The notes under the pieces: generated by a model
What the model saw: only the letters and a program-made list of their open reading frames with translations
What the model was told of the DNA's origin: nothing
Database searches by the model: none
Shown here: piece by piece, positions 3,253 to 22,027 of the stretch
Numbering within the stretch: position 1 is the first letter of the stretch
Layout: each line of letters opens with the position of its first letter
Made by a program: the position numbers and the translations under genes
Assembly (NCBI GenBank): GCA_011109175.1
Contig: RDEW01000098.1
Span: 18,715 to 81,926, forward strand
DNA from: Dicyema japonicum
Taxonomy: Eukaryota; Animalia; Dicyemida
Direction: 5' to 3'
Length of the DNA: 63,212 nucleotides

Positions 3253-5980
3253 CAGTATAACTTCCATTTGGGCATCCATCTGAAAAAATTACCCAAAAAA
3301 CAAAGGTTTCCCCAAAAATGGAGGTCAGACGTTTTCTTCACTTTTTATAAAAACTTTAATAGTTTTATCATTTGTTTATGTTGTCCAATTTAGTCGTGTC
3401 CGACCCTTGGAGATCTCATTAACGAGTTTCCTCTAATCTCCTCGATCCGTTGCAATTTGGAGTAGCCTTGATATAGGCATTTCCGTGACGTCTTCCACCG
3501 TGGATAACCATCGAGTCCTTGGTAGGCCAGGTCTTTTTCTCCCAGTAATATTGCTCAGCATAATGGTTCTTTCCAGTGAATCAGAGCGGACAACATGCCC
3601 AAAGAACTCCAATCTGTGTTTACGAATCTTCCCTCTAGCGAAATGTCAGTCTCTACCCGTTTGAGTACATTGATAGTTGTTACTTTGGAGGTCCAAGGGA
3701 TTCTTAGTAACCTCCTATAGCACCACAGCTCAAAAGCATTAATTCTTCGCTTATCCGCCTTTTTCAATGTTCATAATTCTGCGCCGTACAAAAAAACCGG
3801 GAGCACAATTGCTTTAACTAATCTGCATTTGGTCCTTAAGGAGATATCTTTATTTTTCCAAATTCTATTCATTCTCTGGAAGGTGTCTCGTCCCATGGCA
3901 ATTCGCCTCTTGATTTCTAGGCCTCCGTCACCATTCCGATTAATTAGACATCCCAGAAAAAACAACATTATCACAACTCTCTATTTTCTCATTCCCAATT
4001 TTTAGTTCTATTATTCCATTATTAGCAGTAGTCATAATTTTGGTCTTCTTGATGTTTAGCAATAAACCAAAGACGGCGCTCTTCTCTGAATCTTAGAATC
4101 AACTCCCTGAGGCCATTTTCTGTTTCAGCCAGTAAGGTTGTATCGTCAGCATAGCGCAAATTATTGATGTTCCTGCCTCCAATTTTAATCCCGTTATTTG
4201 ATACAATATCCAATTTAGTCATAATCATTTCGGCATAAATATTGAATAGGATGGGAGCTAATAAGAATCCTTGTCTTACTCCTTTACAAATTTTGAACCA
4301 ATCGGTATTGGCCGATGAAGCACAAGTATACACTCTTTTGGGATTCATGGGCTTTCTCCATAATCCACCGGACATTTGCTATATGGTCACGTGTGCCTCG
4401 TCTCTTCCTGAATCCTGCTTAGACATCCGGTAGAATTATTTCGGCATTTTGGTATTAGACGATGTTGTATTATTTTAGAAGTATTTTGCTGACGTGTGGA
4501 ATTAAAGCTATTGTACGATAGTTTGAACAGTCCTTGCTATCCCCTTTTTTCGGTATTGGAATAAATATAGATCTTTTCCACTCACGTGGCCAAATACCAG
4601 TTTCCCAAATTTTTTGACATAGACTGGTGATAGCTGTCACCGGTATAGCCTTTAACAATTCGCTTGAGTTGTTGTCAATCCCGGTGCCTTGTTCCCCGTT
4701 AATTGCCGTGTAGCCCACACGCATTCCTCTCAAGGATTTTATGCCCCTCACTCGACGTTGCTTCATCAACTCATATTGGTGGGCACACAGTTTCTGAATA
4801 TAGCCGCTCCGTATATTTATCATATTTTCTATTAATTTTATTAATAAGTAATGTATGAACATTTAAGCATGTTACCCATTAATTTTATTGATAACTAATG
4901 TATTTTTTTAAACAGAAATTTTTTTATTCTATTACACAAAAATAATCTGTTATTTAGTTTCCTGTTGCAGATTTCTTCATATGTTAGCCAATATTTTTCT
5001 GAAATTGTGATAATCTTTTAGCGCACCGAGAAACAAACGGTGAATAATTTCCTCAAGTAACAAAACAATTTTTCTTTTTTGCTTAATCATCTGTAGTGAT
5101 TAGCCAAGTAAGAAATATTTCTGATGTCATCCAAGAATTTTTGGATTATGAATAGAAAACTAAGAATCGTGACTTTTTGCTTGCTTCTTTTAATGCTGAA
5201 ACAGTCTTCACTTATAAATGATTTTGACGGTATCCTTTTAATAAATAATCGAGTCTCGTAGCAATTAAAAATATTTTGAAGTCCATATTCTTTTACGTAT
5301 TCATCATACTTGGCAAAAGCACACCAACGAAAAAACATCGGAAGAGTTTTTTCTCCACTAATTGTCTTAAATGACAACTCATGTCTATTGTTAAATTTTT
5401 CATACCAGCCATTGGACCCTTTGAACGACGAATAATCCTTGCTACTTTAGAGGCAATATTTTTTAAAGAAAGCCGGACACAGAAATAAATTCCTCCCTTG
5501 TCTTGGTAAAAGCCTCAAAAACGATTTTATCCATTTTTTAGATAAAGTATTAGGAGAGCATTTTGAACAGTTCCAGTATTAAAAAAATTAGATAATTTTT
5601 TATACGTGACACAGTGCCTAAAAACTGAAATTACTAAACAACCTTTTCTAATTTTATATTTATTTACAATATCTCGTTCAGTAAGATGTTCATTTTCACT
5701 TATTTCCTTAGCAAATTTAACCCTTAACTCAATACTAAGCTTACGAGCCATAACCACAAGAATGCAAAAATTACACGAGGCTTCAAAATAAAATTTTAAA
5801 TAATTAATTTTAATATTAATTGCAAATATGTATAAAATTTAAAATTCCAGTGCCTTACTTAGAGTTCCTATAATTTAAAAATTTGGAAAATATTGCATAA
5901 AAATTATCTTATTTTTTAAACTACCTAAAAAACAGAGGTTTCTCCAAATCAGAGGTTTGCCCCAAATGTAAGTCATACTG
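3253..5980 (-). mobile_element. pogo/Tigger-like DNA transposon (degraded), interrupted by an RTE
   Basis: TA-flanked imperfect TIRs (CAGTATAACTTCCATTTGGGC / rc CAGTATGACTTACATTTGGGG). Minus-strand HTH (ORF 5527-5757) and DDE-like segment NIFNCYETRLF (ORF 5087-5377). Confidence 0.8.
3385..4735 (-). mobile_element. RTE-clade LINE, 5'-truncated and degraded
   Basis: WPREWKRSIFIPIPKKGD..CSNYRTIALI, GVRQG..LAPILFNIY, LRYADD, LYGAE, RRINAFELWCYRR, and a BovB-like 3' end GTCGGACACGACT. Confidence 0.9.
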
Positions 5981-7230
5981 TAGTAAGTTTCGATCGGCTG
6001 AGTTATATTTTCTCAATTCTTTCGCTCAAGCTCTTAAGAGAACAACTCCCCAATACCATGTCTTGTCAATAACTCAATATCGATATCATTTATTGTGATT
6101 GTCCGATGCGACTAATGCGAATTTATGTTCTACCAGCTTGCTCTCTAGTTTTGAATATATGCTGCTATAGAATCACTTTGAGTGTGTTGTGCTTACGTAA
6201 CTTGCATATACCATTACAGGTTAGCACTAGGAGTACTATATTTACTTTACTTCGACTCGTTTTAATACCTATTGTTACTTGATCTCTATAACCAGTCCAA
6301 GAAAATCTATAAAACCAGCAAATAGCATATTGGTTAGTCTAGTCGCTCTAGTCGGGATTAGCTGTAAGTTCGATTCCTACACAGCTACCTAATTGTCGGA
6401 GGATTCTATTCTAATCTTTGATTTCGCCAAATCCTAAAGGTATTAAGTGATCAACTTTTTCAGGAGACGTCCAGTTCCTCGTCGACATCGAATATGGATG
6501 GACTTGTTATTTGGAAAGAACTCGTCTTACTTCGACCGTGGGAACTGGAATACTTTAAATGGAAGTTCATATCTTTCAGGTATATCCGGGTTATTAGATA
6601 AAACTAAATAACCATTAGTCTGTTTTTTAAGATAAATGTTTAATTATCGCCTAATAAATAGCACCAACCATAATTTTTATCCTGGAATCCTAAGCAAATC
6701 AACTTTCTTTGTAAAAACTTCTCTTAAACTGAAATTCTTTTATTTGATGTTCCATTTGTTCTTTATTCCAGAAACGTTAAGGGAGACATACGAAGGCGAT
6801 GTATACTCATTAAAGAACAATGTCATCGACTTTCAAGATCCATCAGGTTCAATTCTCTAGCACGGTTCGTGTCGCCTCTTCATGACTTTGATGTCTCACA
6901 TGGGTGGGGTCTGGTTTAAAAGCAGACAAATTGATTAGACGGACTTAATTCTTACAATCTTTTGTAGTCTACACGAAATAGAGATCCATTATCTCAGATT
7001 GTATATTTAGGTTAATCACATGAATTTATTCCAGTTTTGTGTAGTTTCACTAAAGGATGAGTCATACAAAATGACTAAATTAACGATAAAGCGATCAAAA
7101 TGTTAAATATCACACCAATTAACGAATTACCTACCATATGCTAAGCGAATCAGTGGAGAAACCATCAGAGTCCGCTTTATATGGAATTTTAGGGGGCGAA
7201 AAATTCGGTGGAGAGCTCGATTTTCATAAT

Positions 7231-7674
7231 CTAAAATGATGTGAAATGCCCAATACAGTTAACTAAGTCTACTGACATATTCTTTGGCAATTTTTTTAAT
7301 TTGAAATTCAATGATTTTTTCCGATGTTCCAATGCGGGTGACCACGGTAGCTTTTTCATAGAAGAACTCAATTCTGATAAGGTTTGGTAATCTGAATCGT
7401 ATTCGTTACTCGAATTATTTTTTGTTGATGCAAATCTTCCAAATTTTTGAGTGTCTTGAGAAATAGTCTGCTGTAGTGTTTCAGGCTCCATAGATGCTTC
7501 GATTATAGAAATTTGGGAGTGTGGTCTCAAAACATTTGCTTCGCCCGATAGGCACTCATTTGTTTCAAAAGGAGATCTTGATCTGGTCGAAACTGGTTCA
7601 AGTGCAGACATTTCGTTAAATTTCTTTATTAATTTTGAAACTCTTGAGTCTTCAATGTTAAGAATTTCACTCAT
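7231..7674 (-). CDS. Orphan protein, member 1 of the V-x-x-L-I-x-x-F family (147 aa)
   Basis: Open ATG ORF. Shares SRVSKLIKKFNEM and KLPWSPALEHRKK with the ORF at 9415-10035. Confidence 0.65.
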   Translation of the reverse strand: MSEILNIEDSRVSKLIKKFNEMSALEPVSTRSRSPFETNECLSGEANVLRPHSQISIIEASMEPETLQQTISQDTQKFGRFASTKNNSSNEYDSDYQTLSELSSSMKKLPWSPALEHRKKSLNFKLKKLPKNMSVDLVNCIGHFTSF

Positions 7675-9414
7675 TTCTAAATGTCTAATATAGGGTTAGG
7701 GTCATATACCTTCTTTCTCCAGCTTCAATTTTCAAAATTATGCCGTATTTGACTTAATATCGAATTATTCTTAATATTTCGGAGAAATTTGACAGAAAAT
7801 TTCCTGGTTTTATTAGAGTATTTAAACACTGATTCAAGAATTTTATAAAATTTTTAATATGAGTCCCTTCTATAAACAAATAATAAGAGGACAGATTGGT
7901 GAACGATCTCTGAGTCTCTTTTGTGGACAAGTATTGACTTTGCAGCTGAAATTAATCATTGGATTCATATTTTGGTGAAAAATGGGGATGACAAAAAACC
8001 AGTTCTATTCCTCGTAAGTAGAAGATGATGTAAAGAAAGATACTGGAGTAGAAATGGATAAGTATTTAATAAAAAGTTCACCGGCCTTCACTTGTTAAGC
8101 CTAGTGAACCGTTTATAAATCGAGCCTTTATATTTCTCAGCTTGGGGAATCTTATCTCCCAATAAATTTATAAGGGAGTGGCGATCTCACTTCAAATTGT
8201 CATCCAAACAGTAAGGATGATGTATACGGAAGATATCCCGTACAAATTAATGTTAAAGTCACAGGAAGACATGGATAACAACGACCAGTAGCATATCCAC
8301 AAATGTTATCATTGGAGATATGGTTGATATTGGAACGAGTTCTTGGAATTATGTAGTACGTTCAGGATATTTTGGTACTGTAATCGGATACAATAAAGTT
8401 TATGAAACATTATTTTGCTTAAAAAACAAAGATTAACATTATTATTTAATCGCATTAAAATGACTTCACAATTTGTGTGATTTGGATCTTTTGACAGAAC
8501 GTAGAGTCTGATGACATCGGATCGTACAGTAGTGGTCTTCAATCAAAAAGATGGACTTTTAGGCAAAAGTCAGTTCCCGTCAAACAGATCTCATTCGTGA
8601 GGCACGAGCCCTTCTGGCATGCAACAGTTGTTGAACAGGATCTTCTTAACTTCTTCATAAGAAAATCTACTGGTAAAAACTCTACTTATGAATGAAGTGA
8701 TGTCCGCTATGATATAACGTGTGATGAAGATGAAAGAGGATTGACTGAATTTTCCACCTCTTTCATATCGGAAGGCTCATTCGTCTTCGAAACTTAAGGG
8801 GAGGTTGGATGAATTAGTAGAGGAATCATCAATGAAATCGAATTGCGATTTTAATGCGTTTCATGGAGAGGACACAGGGCCATCAGGTGATCTTGAAATC
8901 CTTAAACAACCTCCTTACTATTGCTCGCTGTCCGACCCAAGATCCAACACACTTCTTCTATGCTCGTGTTACTTACAAAAATAATGGATGTGCCAATTTG
9001 GACTCCCATTTATCTTCAGTCTCCTTAATTTTCATTAAGTTCATTAACCTGGATACTCCGAGAAATGACTAAATACTTAACGACTACTTAAAGAGACTTA
9101 CTAACATCACACAAGCTCATCCATAACCAGGTATGGAAACCTCTTCGGAGGAGTGAGGGGAACAAATGATCTTTTTTCTTGACACCCTGTAATTGAGACA
9201 GGTAGATAGTATAAAGACGTCATTCTAATAGAACGATAGAAGGAACAGAGGAAACGGGGAGAAACCTTTATCCAAGTAGCAAGTGTGGAAATCAAGCCCA
9301 ATGATATGTCTTTCTAATCACTAAACTACTTTTTTTAAATTTAAAATTAAAAAAAATTTTTTCGTTGATTAAATTCAATGTTTTTATTCACAAAAAAATA
9401 ACAAGATGAGTGTT

Positions 9415-18179: not shown

Positions 18180-21100
18180 AAATAGTAATTTAAATAATTA
18201 ATAATATTATAAGGAAAAAGAAAAAGAATAGTTAATTTTAATTCAGCTGTTGGAGATGCACAAGCTATTCCCACGGACAACAGCCAACGAGAGCCTCTCC
18301 TTGAGCCATCTCGTCTCACGAAGATCACCAGTTTTGTCAGTTAGTAGTTTTCCCAAATGGTTCAGGAACTTCAGCGTTTTAGGGCCAAAGTTCCCCGAAG
18401 TTTCAATCGCGACAGGTGCGAAAATGTACCTGTCGCTGATATCCGAGTATTAGCATTTTTTACTTCCTCTGCTTGAGAAGAAGGTCTGCCCGGTGAATAA
18501 TTTTTTTGCTTGGGGCGAAAGAGCAGACACAGGTCACATCCCATACAAGGTTTCTCCCTCGCTCAAAAGGAAAGGAGGTCATGCCGTCAGGGCGTCTTCC
18601 GTTGTCAAATAGACCAGTCGGTTCGATCCGGCAACGGAATCCAGCCGATTCTAATGCCCTCTTAATGATGCCGTTCATTGCCGAATGTCGAGAAGATCTG
18701 CCAATTCCGCTCCGGCATGAGAGGAGGTGGAGACCCAGTTCGTCCGATAGACAGCCACATTTGCACTTCGATTTGGTGCAAACAGGCAATCCGAGGTGTA
18801 GACATACAGCTGTACGGAGTGAGTCATCATCCAACAATCCACCAACTTCTTGACATGGGTAAACCCCAAGCCAAGATCCATCAACCGCCTCCCTCGAATT
18901 TTGGAAACAATCCAGGCGATGTCCATAGAGCCGGCTGACTAGGTTGGATGCCAGAGCATTCCATCTATGGATCATCCAAGACGATTGTTGGTCTGGATTA
19001 CGCGGCTCGCCAAGCCCTTCACTTCGCCACACGTCCATGTATTCAACCAAGTCATTGGACAGTTTCCGAGATGGAAGCTTTGAAAGAATTGAGTCCACTT
19101 GGTTTTTGCATGAAAGTTTTGAGGCAAAATACGCCGGGCCAGCAATTTGGCAGGGAGTAGTAAGACCGATTCCACCCAATGATATCGGTAATTGAGTCTG
19201 TATCCATCCAGGGGTGTCAAGAGAAACGTTAAGTACGAATTCAGTACATCTTTTGAGGCAATCAGAGTATTCCATTAAAAGGGAATCACACTTATAACAT
19301 GGTGCAGTCCTTAGTAAATAGTTTAATCTTGGAATGGACAAGCAGTTTCTCAATAGGAAGAGGGCAATATGGTTGTCAACATGCCGCAAACGGGTCTCAA
19401 AAGTACCGAGCTCTATTGTCCTTTCTTTAAACACGTCCACAATTTGGTCTTCGAATATAGGAGAACCAAGGAACAGAGACTCCCCAACTGGAACCGATGC
19501 ATAATTTTCGAGAGTGTATTTAAACTGGTCATTGTAGAAAGTAGTCAGATCGGGACTCAAATTGATCTTGATTAATTCACATTTGGCCTTGTTGACAGAA
19601 AGGCCAATCGCTTCGAATTCAGATATCAAACGACGCACGTCCTCCAAAACTGTATCTGGATGTCCACCAATGATTCCGTCATCCAAATACCATAAATTTA
19701 AAGGTGATTTTAAGCATGCGGCTACTCCTGGATCCCCAAAGCAAAGAGAAGAGGTCCAAGTGGGTCGCCTTGTTGAACACCAGTTCGTGATTTAATGATG
19801 GCATCGTGGAAAACCAATGATGATGGATTAGAATATGAAAGGCGAACAATCTCCCAAATATGTGGTAAATTTTTTTGGCATAACTCCAATAAATGATCTC
19901 TCCTTATGGAATTAAATGCGTTCTTAAGATCTACTTTGCAGACAACAACGTCCTCTTTGCATTCGGACGACGACGTGAAAAAACTCCTCACTGCGTGGAC
20001 ACAAGCCTCTGCACCGCCACGAACTCCAACGCCCATCTGTATAGGACTGAAAATAGGAAGTAATCTTTGAACCCCAGAAAAGCAAGCGACTTTAGCTGCA
20101 AGTCTCCTGAAACACGTTTCCAATAGCAATCGGTCTGACACCGCCGTCAGGCTTTCGGAGAGCAACAAGATTAGCAGAAAATAACATATCTCGACCGAAA
20201 GGAGACAAACATCCAGAAAGAATTTTGTTGATCAGTTCGCAAATAACATTCGAAAGATCCTTTCCGACAGATCCCATCATTGGAGCTGTGAGATCACGTA
20301 GGTGACCGGGTCTCAAGCCATCAATACCACCTCCACTACTAGGACGAAATGAACGCAGGGAGGTGATTATATCTTCGTTAGAGGCGAGCAATTGTTCCTC
20401 GTGGAAAGGTTTTATAGTTCTCAAGTCTTCGGGGGATCCGGGGTGTTTTTCTCGTAAAGACATGAGCGTTTCAGGGGTGTTTTTAAGTGTCCCAGGATCA
20501 CAAACTAATAGCCGTACAGCACCGCGAATATCGCCTTCCATAAGTTTCATCCTGATTAGTTTCTTTATTAAGCGAAGTTCCTCCGTTTTCGGACGCTTTG
20601 AACTCCGGGGTGCAATTTGAGTTGATTTTAAAGCAGTAAGTGACATTTTATGTTCATTTAGAAACAGTCTAACTCTCTTTTTGATATTCGTTGCGAGAGA
20701 AGTGGATGCTTCCGTTGGTCTTCTGATCCCAAGAGTGAGTGACGGGAAAAGGAAAAATTTGACCCATTCCGAAGAGACGGCGTCAGGCTTCAAAACATCC
20801 TTGATGGTGGAGATCAAGGCCTCGGCAACAGTTCTCGCACCTTTGGGTATCTTCACAGGAATGGTCACGTCCGAGCGCGTCCGAGAGACCAGTTTCAAAG
20901 CTTCATCAGGATCTGCAACAAGAGTAGGGTCAAACGGTTCAATGCAAGCAGCGTGACCATTAGGAAACCCCGAACCAATTCCAAGGCACGAGCGGCAGTG
21001 CCATACCCCAAGAGCACGGATAGAGGCCTGAGAGAGCTTCAAACACCCGATGTGGAAGAACACTCCACAGGCAGAACAAGAAATTCCAAACTTTCTCAAA

Positions 21101-21355
21101 TTGCTCATGTTGCAGGCAGAGCAATTAGACGATGACTTTTCGAGTAACATTCCACTGAATCAACAATAGGCGAAAATCAAGAATAGGGGAATAATCTCAA
21201 TAGGCGAAAATCAAGAATAGGGGATAATCTCAATAGGCGAAAATCAAGAATAGGAGAATAGTCTCAATAGGCGAAAATAGTCAATAAGAGAAAGTCAAAA
21301 ATAGGAAAATAATCACAATAGGCGAAAAACAACAACAACACACAACGACAACACG
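18180..21355 (-). mobile_element. Near full-length CRE-like RLE retrotransposon: PHD finger-RT-CCHC knuckle-PD-(D/E)xK endonuclease (coding about 21150 to 18243)
   Basis: PHD: C-x2-C..C-x2-C-x4-H-x2-C..W-x-C-x2-C. RT: VRPIAIG, GAEACVHA, DLKNAFN, QQGDPLGP, intact WYLDDG. Knuckle: CKCG..GLHLLSC. RLE: RH..N..RPDG..WDVT..KY..ETSG..RLSLAVVRGN. About four 1-nt frameshifts. Confidence 0.92.
21165..21330 (-). repeat. ~33-bp tandem repeats in the 5' UTR of the PHD-CRE element
   Basis: The unit AATAGGCGAAAATCAAGAATAGGG(G)ATAATCTC occurs three times nearly intact, plus degenerate copies, followed by a CAA-rich stretch. Confidence 0.9.
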
Positions 21356-22027
21356 TTTTTATTTTACAAATATTAATTGTACGATAGGACAAAGACACGT
21401 CAAATTTTGACTAATTTAAATTAATTTAATACTAGATATAATAATTTAAATTAATTTTTCTCCATATTATTTGTATCCCAAATTGTTATTTGTCACATCG
21501 TGATTATACATTGTTTCAATCTCAAGAACATTTATTGAGATTCCATCCAAATATTCTAAATATTGTTGATAAAAAGGATTCAAACAATGAACAAACATTC
21601 AATAGTATTAGTTTCCTCTGATGTACCCCTTAAAAATACTACATCTCCAAGTCAGCCAGTATTAAATAAATTTTTAATCTGATATTACTATCATGGATGC
21701 TGAAAATTTTAAAATGCATTCCATTGAACTTGTTGATGTGAAAAGGGATCTCTTGCTCTACCTCCTAACAAGTCAGCGTAGAAAGGCTGTTTTCTGGTCT
21801 AAAATTTATCAAATCAGACTTCGAGCTTTTATGAAGAAAGACTGTCGAAGTTATATTATTTCTAAAAAATAATAGTTAAATTTTCTTTTCTAAATGTTTT
21901 TTTTATATTTTCTGTTATTCTACAACGTTTGATTTTTTATATAATACAGAGTGGAGGAGTTCGAGTCGTATTATATTTACCGACTCCACAGCCTTGATGT
22001 CTCCAAAATCAGTATTGGGGGGTGGGG

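Follow-up and report, generated by a model that had tools for sequence, protein, structure and literature searches.

Long interspersed nuclear elements (LINEs) with a restriction-like endonuclease (RLE), such as R2, serve as the model system for target-primed reverse transcription, and gene insertion is now one of their uses. In the current view, they find their targets by reading DNA through C2H2 and Myb domains. The PHD finger is known from the N-termini of open reading frame (ORF) 1 or ORF2 of CR1, L2 and Crack elements, which carry a nuclease of the apurinic/apyrimidinic endonuclease (APE) type (PMC3708506). Here we describe an RLE-type retrotransposon without long terminal repeats (LTRs) that carries a PHD finger ahead of its reverse transcriptase (RT). 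The element lies on a 63,212-nucleotide stretch of the dicyemid Dicyema japonicum (contig RDEW01000098.1, positions 18,715 to 81,926), referred to here as the window. The published assembly of this animal comprises 67.5 Mb in 377 scaffolds and is 49% repeats (PMC6736024); the assembly that we searched held 67,542,437 bases in 377 contigs. The window copy very probably represents, in full-length but decayed form, a non-LTR retrotransposon of the RLE group that has been active recently and lacks site specificity.

A PHD finger precedes RT and RLE in a single reading frame

The element is a full-length copy of 3.15 kb on the minus strand of the window (21356 to ~18205). Its single ORF of ~970 codons encodes, in order, a PHD finger, an N-terminal RT extension, the RT with its YLDD motif, a linker with a CCHC knuckle, a PD-(D/E)XK nuclease and a C-terminal tail. 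Both ends recur in other copies, the 5' end in four type-A copies (alignment A4) and the 3' end in ~30 copies. PHD, RT with YLDD, CCHC and RLE, the parts that an earlier note on this DNA had recognised, were all present on the minus strand in three ORF pieces plus the tail (Table 1). Pfam profiles detected the PHD finger (PF00628) at 27.6 bits in residues 10-55 of piece 1, against a cut-off of 24, and RVT_1 at 32.8 bits in piece 2. The four ligands of the CCHC knuckle are nearly invariant in 25 homologues. In the RLE of homologues, R, P, D, G, W, D and T are nearly invariant and K is invariant.

The first 406 nt come in two alternative forms in the window family. The window copy has the form that we call head A. 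The other, head B (MKTNEERKENTYPCEKC...WYHRSC...WNCQPC), scores 35.9 bits on the Pfam PHD profile and heads at least 13 copies. In a sister family whose RT-RLE region is 42% identical, an uninterrupted frame of 1003 codons encodes PHD, RT (YLDD), CCHC, an RPDG/DAT nuclease and tail, so the PHD-RT-CCHC-RLE design does not depend on the joining of broken pieces. Collectively, the Pfam matches, the motifs and this sister frame bear out the proposal of an RLE-type non-LTR retrotransposon with a PHD finger in frame ahead of the RT. The element had also been thought small at 3.1 kb. This size is ordinary for the clade, in which homologues of 885-1130 aa are found on contigs of 3.0-4.5 kb.

The AlphaFold model of ORF piece 1 had a mean predicted local distance difference test score (pLDDT) of 71.7, with values of 84-86 in the PHD region. 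The top 40 PDB fold matches of this region were all PHD fingers, including those of PHF8, BPTF, AL1, AL3, Pygo, PHF2, DIDO and TAF3; AL1 (5y20), an example of the best fits, gave a target-normalised template modelling (TM) score of 0.81 and a root-mean-square deviation of 1.3 Å. The E-values of these fold matches were weak (0.05-0.7) because the domain makes up only 50 residues of a 352-residue model. The Cys/His cluster is thus scored as a PHD finger by Pfam and is predicted to fold as one. For the C-terminal part, we modelled the equivalent, unbroken stretch of another copy (278 residues; pLDDT 89.7). Its PDB matches were headed by R2Tg and R2Bm (E 2.5e-5, TM 0.51-0.57), followed by Prp8, Holliday-junction resolvases and FokI.

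The family is dispersed and bears the footprints of target-primed reverse transcription

At least 54 further matches to the family were found elsewhere in the genome at 95-99% identity, most of them 5'-truncated and sharing the common 3' end. Word depth in public runs is likewise about ten times higher at the 3' end of the element than at its 5' end. The flanks of ~30 copies were AT-rich and unrelated to one another, which agrees with the scattered insertions proposed in the earlier note and reveals no fixed target; insertion into spliced-leader genes was not seen among these ~30 copies. In truncated copies, target duplications of 10-13 bp directly abut the 5' junction and come again after the A-rich tail (for example AAATAATCAT, TAAATAATTAT, AAAATAATTTAA, AATTATTATATAT and TAAACACGTT). 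The duplications of truncated copies are clearer than those of full-length copies, which are mostly ambiguous in AT-rich flanks. Several duplications resemble the 3' end of the element itself (TTATAATAAA), suggesting that the 3' end of the RNA may anneal to the nicked target. The 5' truncation, the target duplications and the absence of LTRs are footprints of target-primed reverse transcription.

The 5' ends vary among copies. The 34-bp tandem repeat of the 5' untranslated region (5'UTR) is present in ~2 to 5 units depending on the copy (A4 alignment), and additional, incomplete repeats of the GT-rich start (ACGTGTTGTCG...) are seen at some 5' ends, for instance that of locus L002. Small irregularities also mark the 5' junctions of some truncated copies (loci L078 and L063), where 12 nt of the element are repeated or additional AT-rich letters are present. 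Irregularities of this kind are typical of untidy second-strand joining.

The wider RT-RLE superfamily is abundant in this genome: a first pass gave 4,000-8,000 candidates, which fall into dozens of families at 38-50% identity, several with long open frames. In a genome that is half repeats, this superfamily is a main component, probably making up a major part of the 49% repeat content. Pieces of the element, covering window 18271-19968 at 98-100% identity and low depth, were also found in run X6, which is labelled as a different organism (organism B) and comes from another study (2015). The sample could be a host that carried the parasite, or it could come from a close relative. The histone genes of the D. 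japonicum assembly lie in tandem arrays with identical repeats (G000:C343:122000-157000 and C20:56800-64400).

The window copy is broken at five places

Frame breaks were called by comparing the window copy with 11 other copies. The comparison revealed five single-base length differences private to the window copy, near 20112, 19729, 18499, 18450 and 18254, and an additional in-frame 3-nt difference near 20832. The single-nucleotide shifts seen in the earlier note thus number five rather than about four. That note had also suggested that the element may be intact in vivo. The window copy is not intact, since the five differences break its frame, and none of 10 near-full-length family copies that we read had an uninterrupted frame, the longest open stretches being 735, 722 and 665 codons. 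Assembled contigs of public runs contain both length forms at each of the break places. This reflects variation within the family, and the contigs therefore cannot tell real breaks from assembly errors at the window locus.

The PHD head may read histones or bind nucleic acid

In the mechanism that we propose, the RLE would nick AT-rich DNA, and the RNA, which ends in …UAUAAUA followed by an A-rich tail, would have its 3' end reverse transcribed from the nick. A second, staggered cut would then yield the target duplication. The PHD head may tether the protein to chromatin, most likely to the histone H3 tail, in the place of the C2H2 and Myb sequence readers of R2. Chromatin tethering of this kind would fit the lack of a fixed target. 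The modelled PHD fold is closest mostly to readers of histone H3 di- or trimethylated at lysine 4 (H3K4me2/3), many of which were solved with H3K4me2/3 peptides, and the W-Y-H-x-x-C-V-G stretch of head B presumably resembles that of the BPTF and ING readers. We put both histone reading and the binding of nucleic acid or something else at a little short of an even chance, and consider it unlikely that the head has no role in targeting.

Several observations weigh against the picture of a retrotransposon that is guided by a histone-reading PHD finger. Across 11 aligned heads, from Dicyema and other sources, all eight zinc ligands are invariant and N17, R19, K20 and W50 are also conserved; the last four make up a basic patch in which no aromatic cage is evident. 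Most heads, though not every one, have an aromatic residue two positions ahead of the His. Sister subclades carry DNA binders (C2H2, SAP, RFX) at the position of the PHD finger. The head of the 1003-codon sister family misses the Pfam PHD profile at E 0.01, although its eight ligands are present. Finally, the target duplications are clear in some copies only, and short matches in AT-rich DNA may arise by chance.

Some of these observations lend substance to the most serious alternative, according to which the head, a PHD-like finger of the treble-clef type, would bind nucleic acid, either the target DNA or the RNA of the element, or another protein, rather than a histone tail. Between ligand pairs 1 and 2 the heads share a conserved, basic N-x-R-K motif, aromatic residues are semi-conserved at one position only, and there are sub-threshold matches to C1 domains, in addition to the DNA binders of the sister subclades. 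However, heads A and B both pass the curated Pfam cut-off for PHD, all of the best fold matches are PHD fingers, many of them with H3K4me2/3 peptides, and head B has the BPTF/ING-like stretch. We regard this alternative as a real possibility, if somewhat less probable than not.

The PHD head is shared with relatives outside Dicyema

The family has more than 800 homologues at 35-48% identity, among them barnacle and Lepidoptera records and many from metagenome or run assemblies; one close relative comes from a marine metagenome (project PRJEB4352). Twelve of 91 homologue N-termini pass the Pfam PHD profile, and others carry C2H2, SAP, RFX or OTU. In eight homologues the head aligns ligand for ligand with the Dicyema heads. 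In a FastTree phylogeny of 120 RT-RLE sequences, the Dicyema families fall within a clade of 28 rows together with seven of the 11 PHD-bearing homologues. Every protein in this clade that has a complete N-terminus has a PHD finger. The rows that lack it all begin downstream of its position and are therefore truncated gene calls. PHD plus RVT_1 clusters of 201 and 97 members are also found in the ESM Atlas (few recorded members, cnidarian or arthropod). Since the PHD head is common to relatives beyond Dicyema, it was inherited rather than invented in this genome. The suggestion that this lineage itself replaced DNA recognition by chromatin reading is not supported, as relatives from the marine metagenome, from other samples and in the ESM Atlas clusters share the head.

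Horizontal transfer could also account for the distribution of the family, which would have reached the dicyemid from its cephalopod host or have gone the other way. A protein labelled 'Octopus sinensis' (P0019) branches as the sister of the window family within the Dicyema radiation (FastTree support values of 98 and 96), and is 69% identical to another Dicyema family. However, on the octopus contig the flanking sequence matches several unrelated Dicyema repeats (87-97% nucleotide identity), which fits contamination by a dicyemid better, and for a second octopus protein, P0025, the best Dicyema match reaches no more than 49% identity. We therefore consider such a transfer very unlikely. The P0019 locus (L051) lies at 157665-179851 of contig VCDQ01000828.1 in the Octopus sinensis assembly GCA_006345805.1. 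The matches of its flanks suggest that the octopus assembly contains dicyemid DNA, unless there was transfer between host and parasite. The Dicyema family closest to P0019 (L032/L045, G000:C20:3757-8838) abuts a run of N where the head would be.

The head and 5'UTR were exchanged between families

Head A is found on five copies of the window family, with unrelated flanks. Amino acid identity is only 35.8% between heads A and B but 97.7% between the bodies that follow them. Head A is also present in more than 25 further places, with 91-98% nucleotide identity. At the four of these places that we examined (L057-L060), the body behind head A belongs to another family and shares only 44.7% amino acid identity with that of the window family. 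The window 5'UTR and PHD head (66 codons) show 98.5% amino acid identity to the head of this other family. Both blastn breakpoints fall at element nt 406 (window ~20951), and contigs of runs X2 and X5 leave the window sequence at 20951 and run on into the body of the other family. The window copy is thus a mosaic that arose in evolution, and after the joining of head and body it spread by transposition to at least five loci. The other family carries head A more often and in more varied form, so the likeliest direction of the exchange is capture of head A by a body of the window family.

The earlier note had named a chimeric join of the PHD reading frame as grounds for giving up its proposal. 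The recurrence of the same head-body join at five loci with unrelated flanks, together with the unbroken frame of the sister family, shows that the fusion is neither a read chimera nor an assembly artefact. It is scarcely credible that the PHD finger is a chance or artefactual join, such as an assembly chimera or a host exon caught by one copy, rather than part of the element: the head and body of the window copy do have different histories, and the sole run-X5 contig across 20951 does continue into other sequence, but the join is identical at all five loci, a different PHD head occupies the same place in the head-B copies, the sister family has its PHD finger in one uninterrupted frame, and homologues from other samples have an alignable PHD finger at the same position.

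The swap shows an RLE element renewing its 5'UTR and N-terminal domain together. A broader proposal, which we put forward tentatively and think rather doubtful, is that a cross-phylum subclade of RLE LINEs picks its sites by chromatin through the PHD head and not by DNA sequence, and that head and 5'UTR form a portable module, exchanged between families, by which targeting and promoter would be swapped in one step. A widespread natural PHD-headed subclade provides a test of whether RLE elements can be steered by chromatin marks, and the occurrence of the two diverged heads, A and B, on almost the same body within a single genome offers a ready-made comparison.

Features of the element

Table 1. 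Positions of the element and its parts in the window.
Feature	Window position	Strand	Basis or remark
Whole element	18205..21356	(-)	5' end ACGTGTTGTCG... at 21356; 3' end ...CCTTATAATA at ~18205
5'UTR, 206 nt	21151..21356	(-)	34-bp tandem repeat at 21335-21158 (Tandem Repeats Finder)
ORF piece 1, 352 codons	20092..21150	(-)	PHD head and N-terminal RT extension (IPVKIPKGAR, KHP and GGIDGLRPGH motifs)
PHD finger, C4HC3: CSAC-x11-CSAC-x4-H-x2-C-x15-C-x2-C	20986..21123	(-)	Pfam PF00628, invariant ligands, fold
Mosaic junction, element nt ~406, within ...NGHA/ACIEPF... (slash, junction)	20949..20953	(-)	Type-A head upstream, family-1 body downstream
ORF piece 2, first half of RT	19722..20168	(-)	Pfam RVT_1
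Frame break 1	20110..20113	(-)	Single-base length difference from other copies
Frame break 2	19728..19730	(-)	Single-base length difference from other copies
ORF piece 3: remaining RT, thumb and linker, CCHC, RLE up to its break	18460..19791	(-)	ORF reading
YLDD, RT catalytic motif	19678..19689	(-)	Motif
CCHC knuckle CKCGCLSDELGLHLLSC	18715..18765	(-)	Motif
RLE core RRPDG...WDVT, PD-(D/E)XK type	18532..18597	(-)	Conserved Lys lies past the next frame break
Frame break 3, inside RLE between D-x-T and Lys	18498..18500	(-)	Single-base length difference
Frame break 4	18449..18451	(-)	Single-base length difference from other copies
C-terminal tail, two further frames (...YSDISDRYIFAPVAIETSGNFGP...RGNSLCI)	18243..18459	(-)	Stop at 18245-18243; homologue consensus
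Frame break 5, alters the last few codons only	18253..18255	(-)	Single-base length difference
Short 3'UTR, ~38 nt, ending CCTTATAATA	18205..18242	(-)	A-rich tails follow in other copies

Comparison with known systems

Sequences of this type are plentiful in public databases as unnamed proteins. We found no description of a PHD-bearing RLE element in the literature covered, which left out Repbase Reports and most subscription journals.

Like the window element, R2 (R2Bm and R2Tg; 8gh6, 9dou) has a single ORF with an N-terminal module before the RT, a linker, a CCHC knuckle and a PD-(D/E)XK nuclease. By sequence, R2 is no more than a distant relative, matching the element at E 1.8e-9 with the similarity confined to the RT. 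R2 has C2H2 and Myb heads and a fixed target in the 28S ribosomal DNA (PMC7650587), in contrast to the PHD head and dispersed AT-rich targets found here, and we rejected membership of the R2 clade on these grounds.

The CRE clade, comprising SLACS, CZAR and CRE1/2 of trypanosomatids, resembles the element in its RLE and single ORF, in a 3' end of the poly(A) type and in target duplications that vary (PMC12278014). The insertion site of CRE elements is a single position in the spliced-leader genes, and their zinc-finger-like motifs number one or two (PMC12278014), whereas the element has no fixed target and a PHD head. The only pointer to CRE is the automatic name 'SLACS' on a barnacle homologue, P0018.

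The BLAG elements of the cockroach (PMC7650587) resemble the element in habit, as they are R2-like, carry an RLE, are non-site-specific and are scattered in the genome. Identity with the BLAG family was rejected: the BLAG heads are C2H2, and the 'Blag' motif between finger and RT was not seen in the N-terminal region of the element, which was inspected without a formal motif search. The exchange of heads also has its counterpart there, since BLAG 2 and 6 are reported to have exchanged their N-terminal zinc-finger region between families through recombination in the 5' part (PMC7650587), as the window family has done with its PHD head.

The PHD carriers of the CR1, L2 and Crack groups differ in the nuclease, which is of the APE type, and in that their PHD finger usually lies in a separate ORF1. 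In the Dicyema element, by contrast, the PHD finger is fused to the RT of an RLE element.

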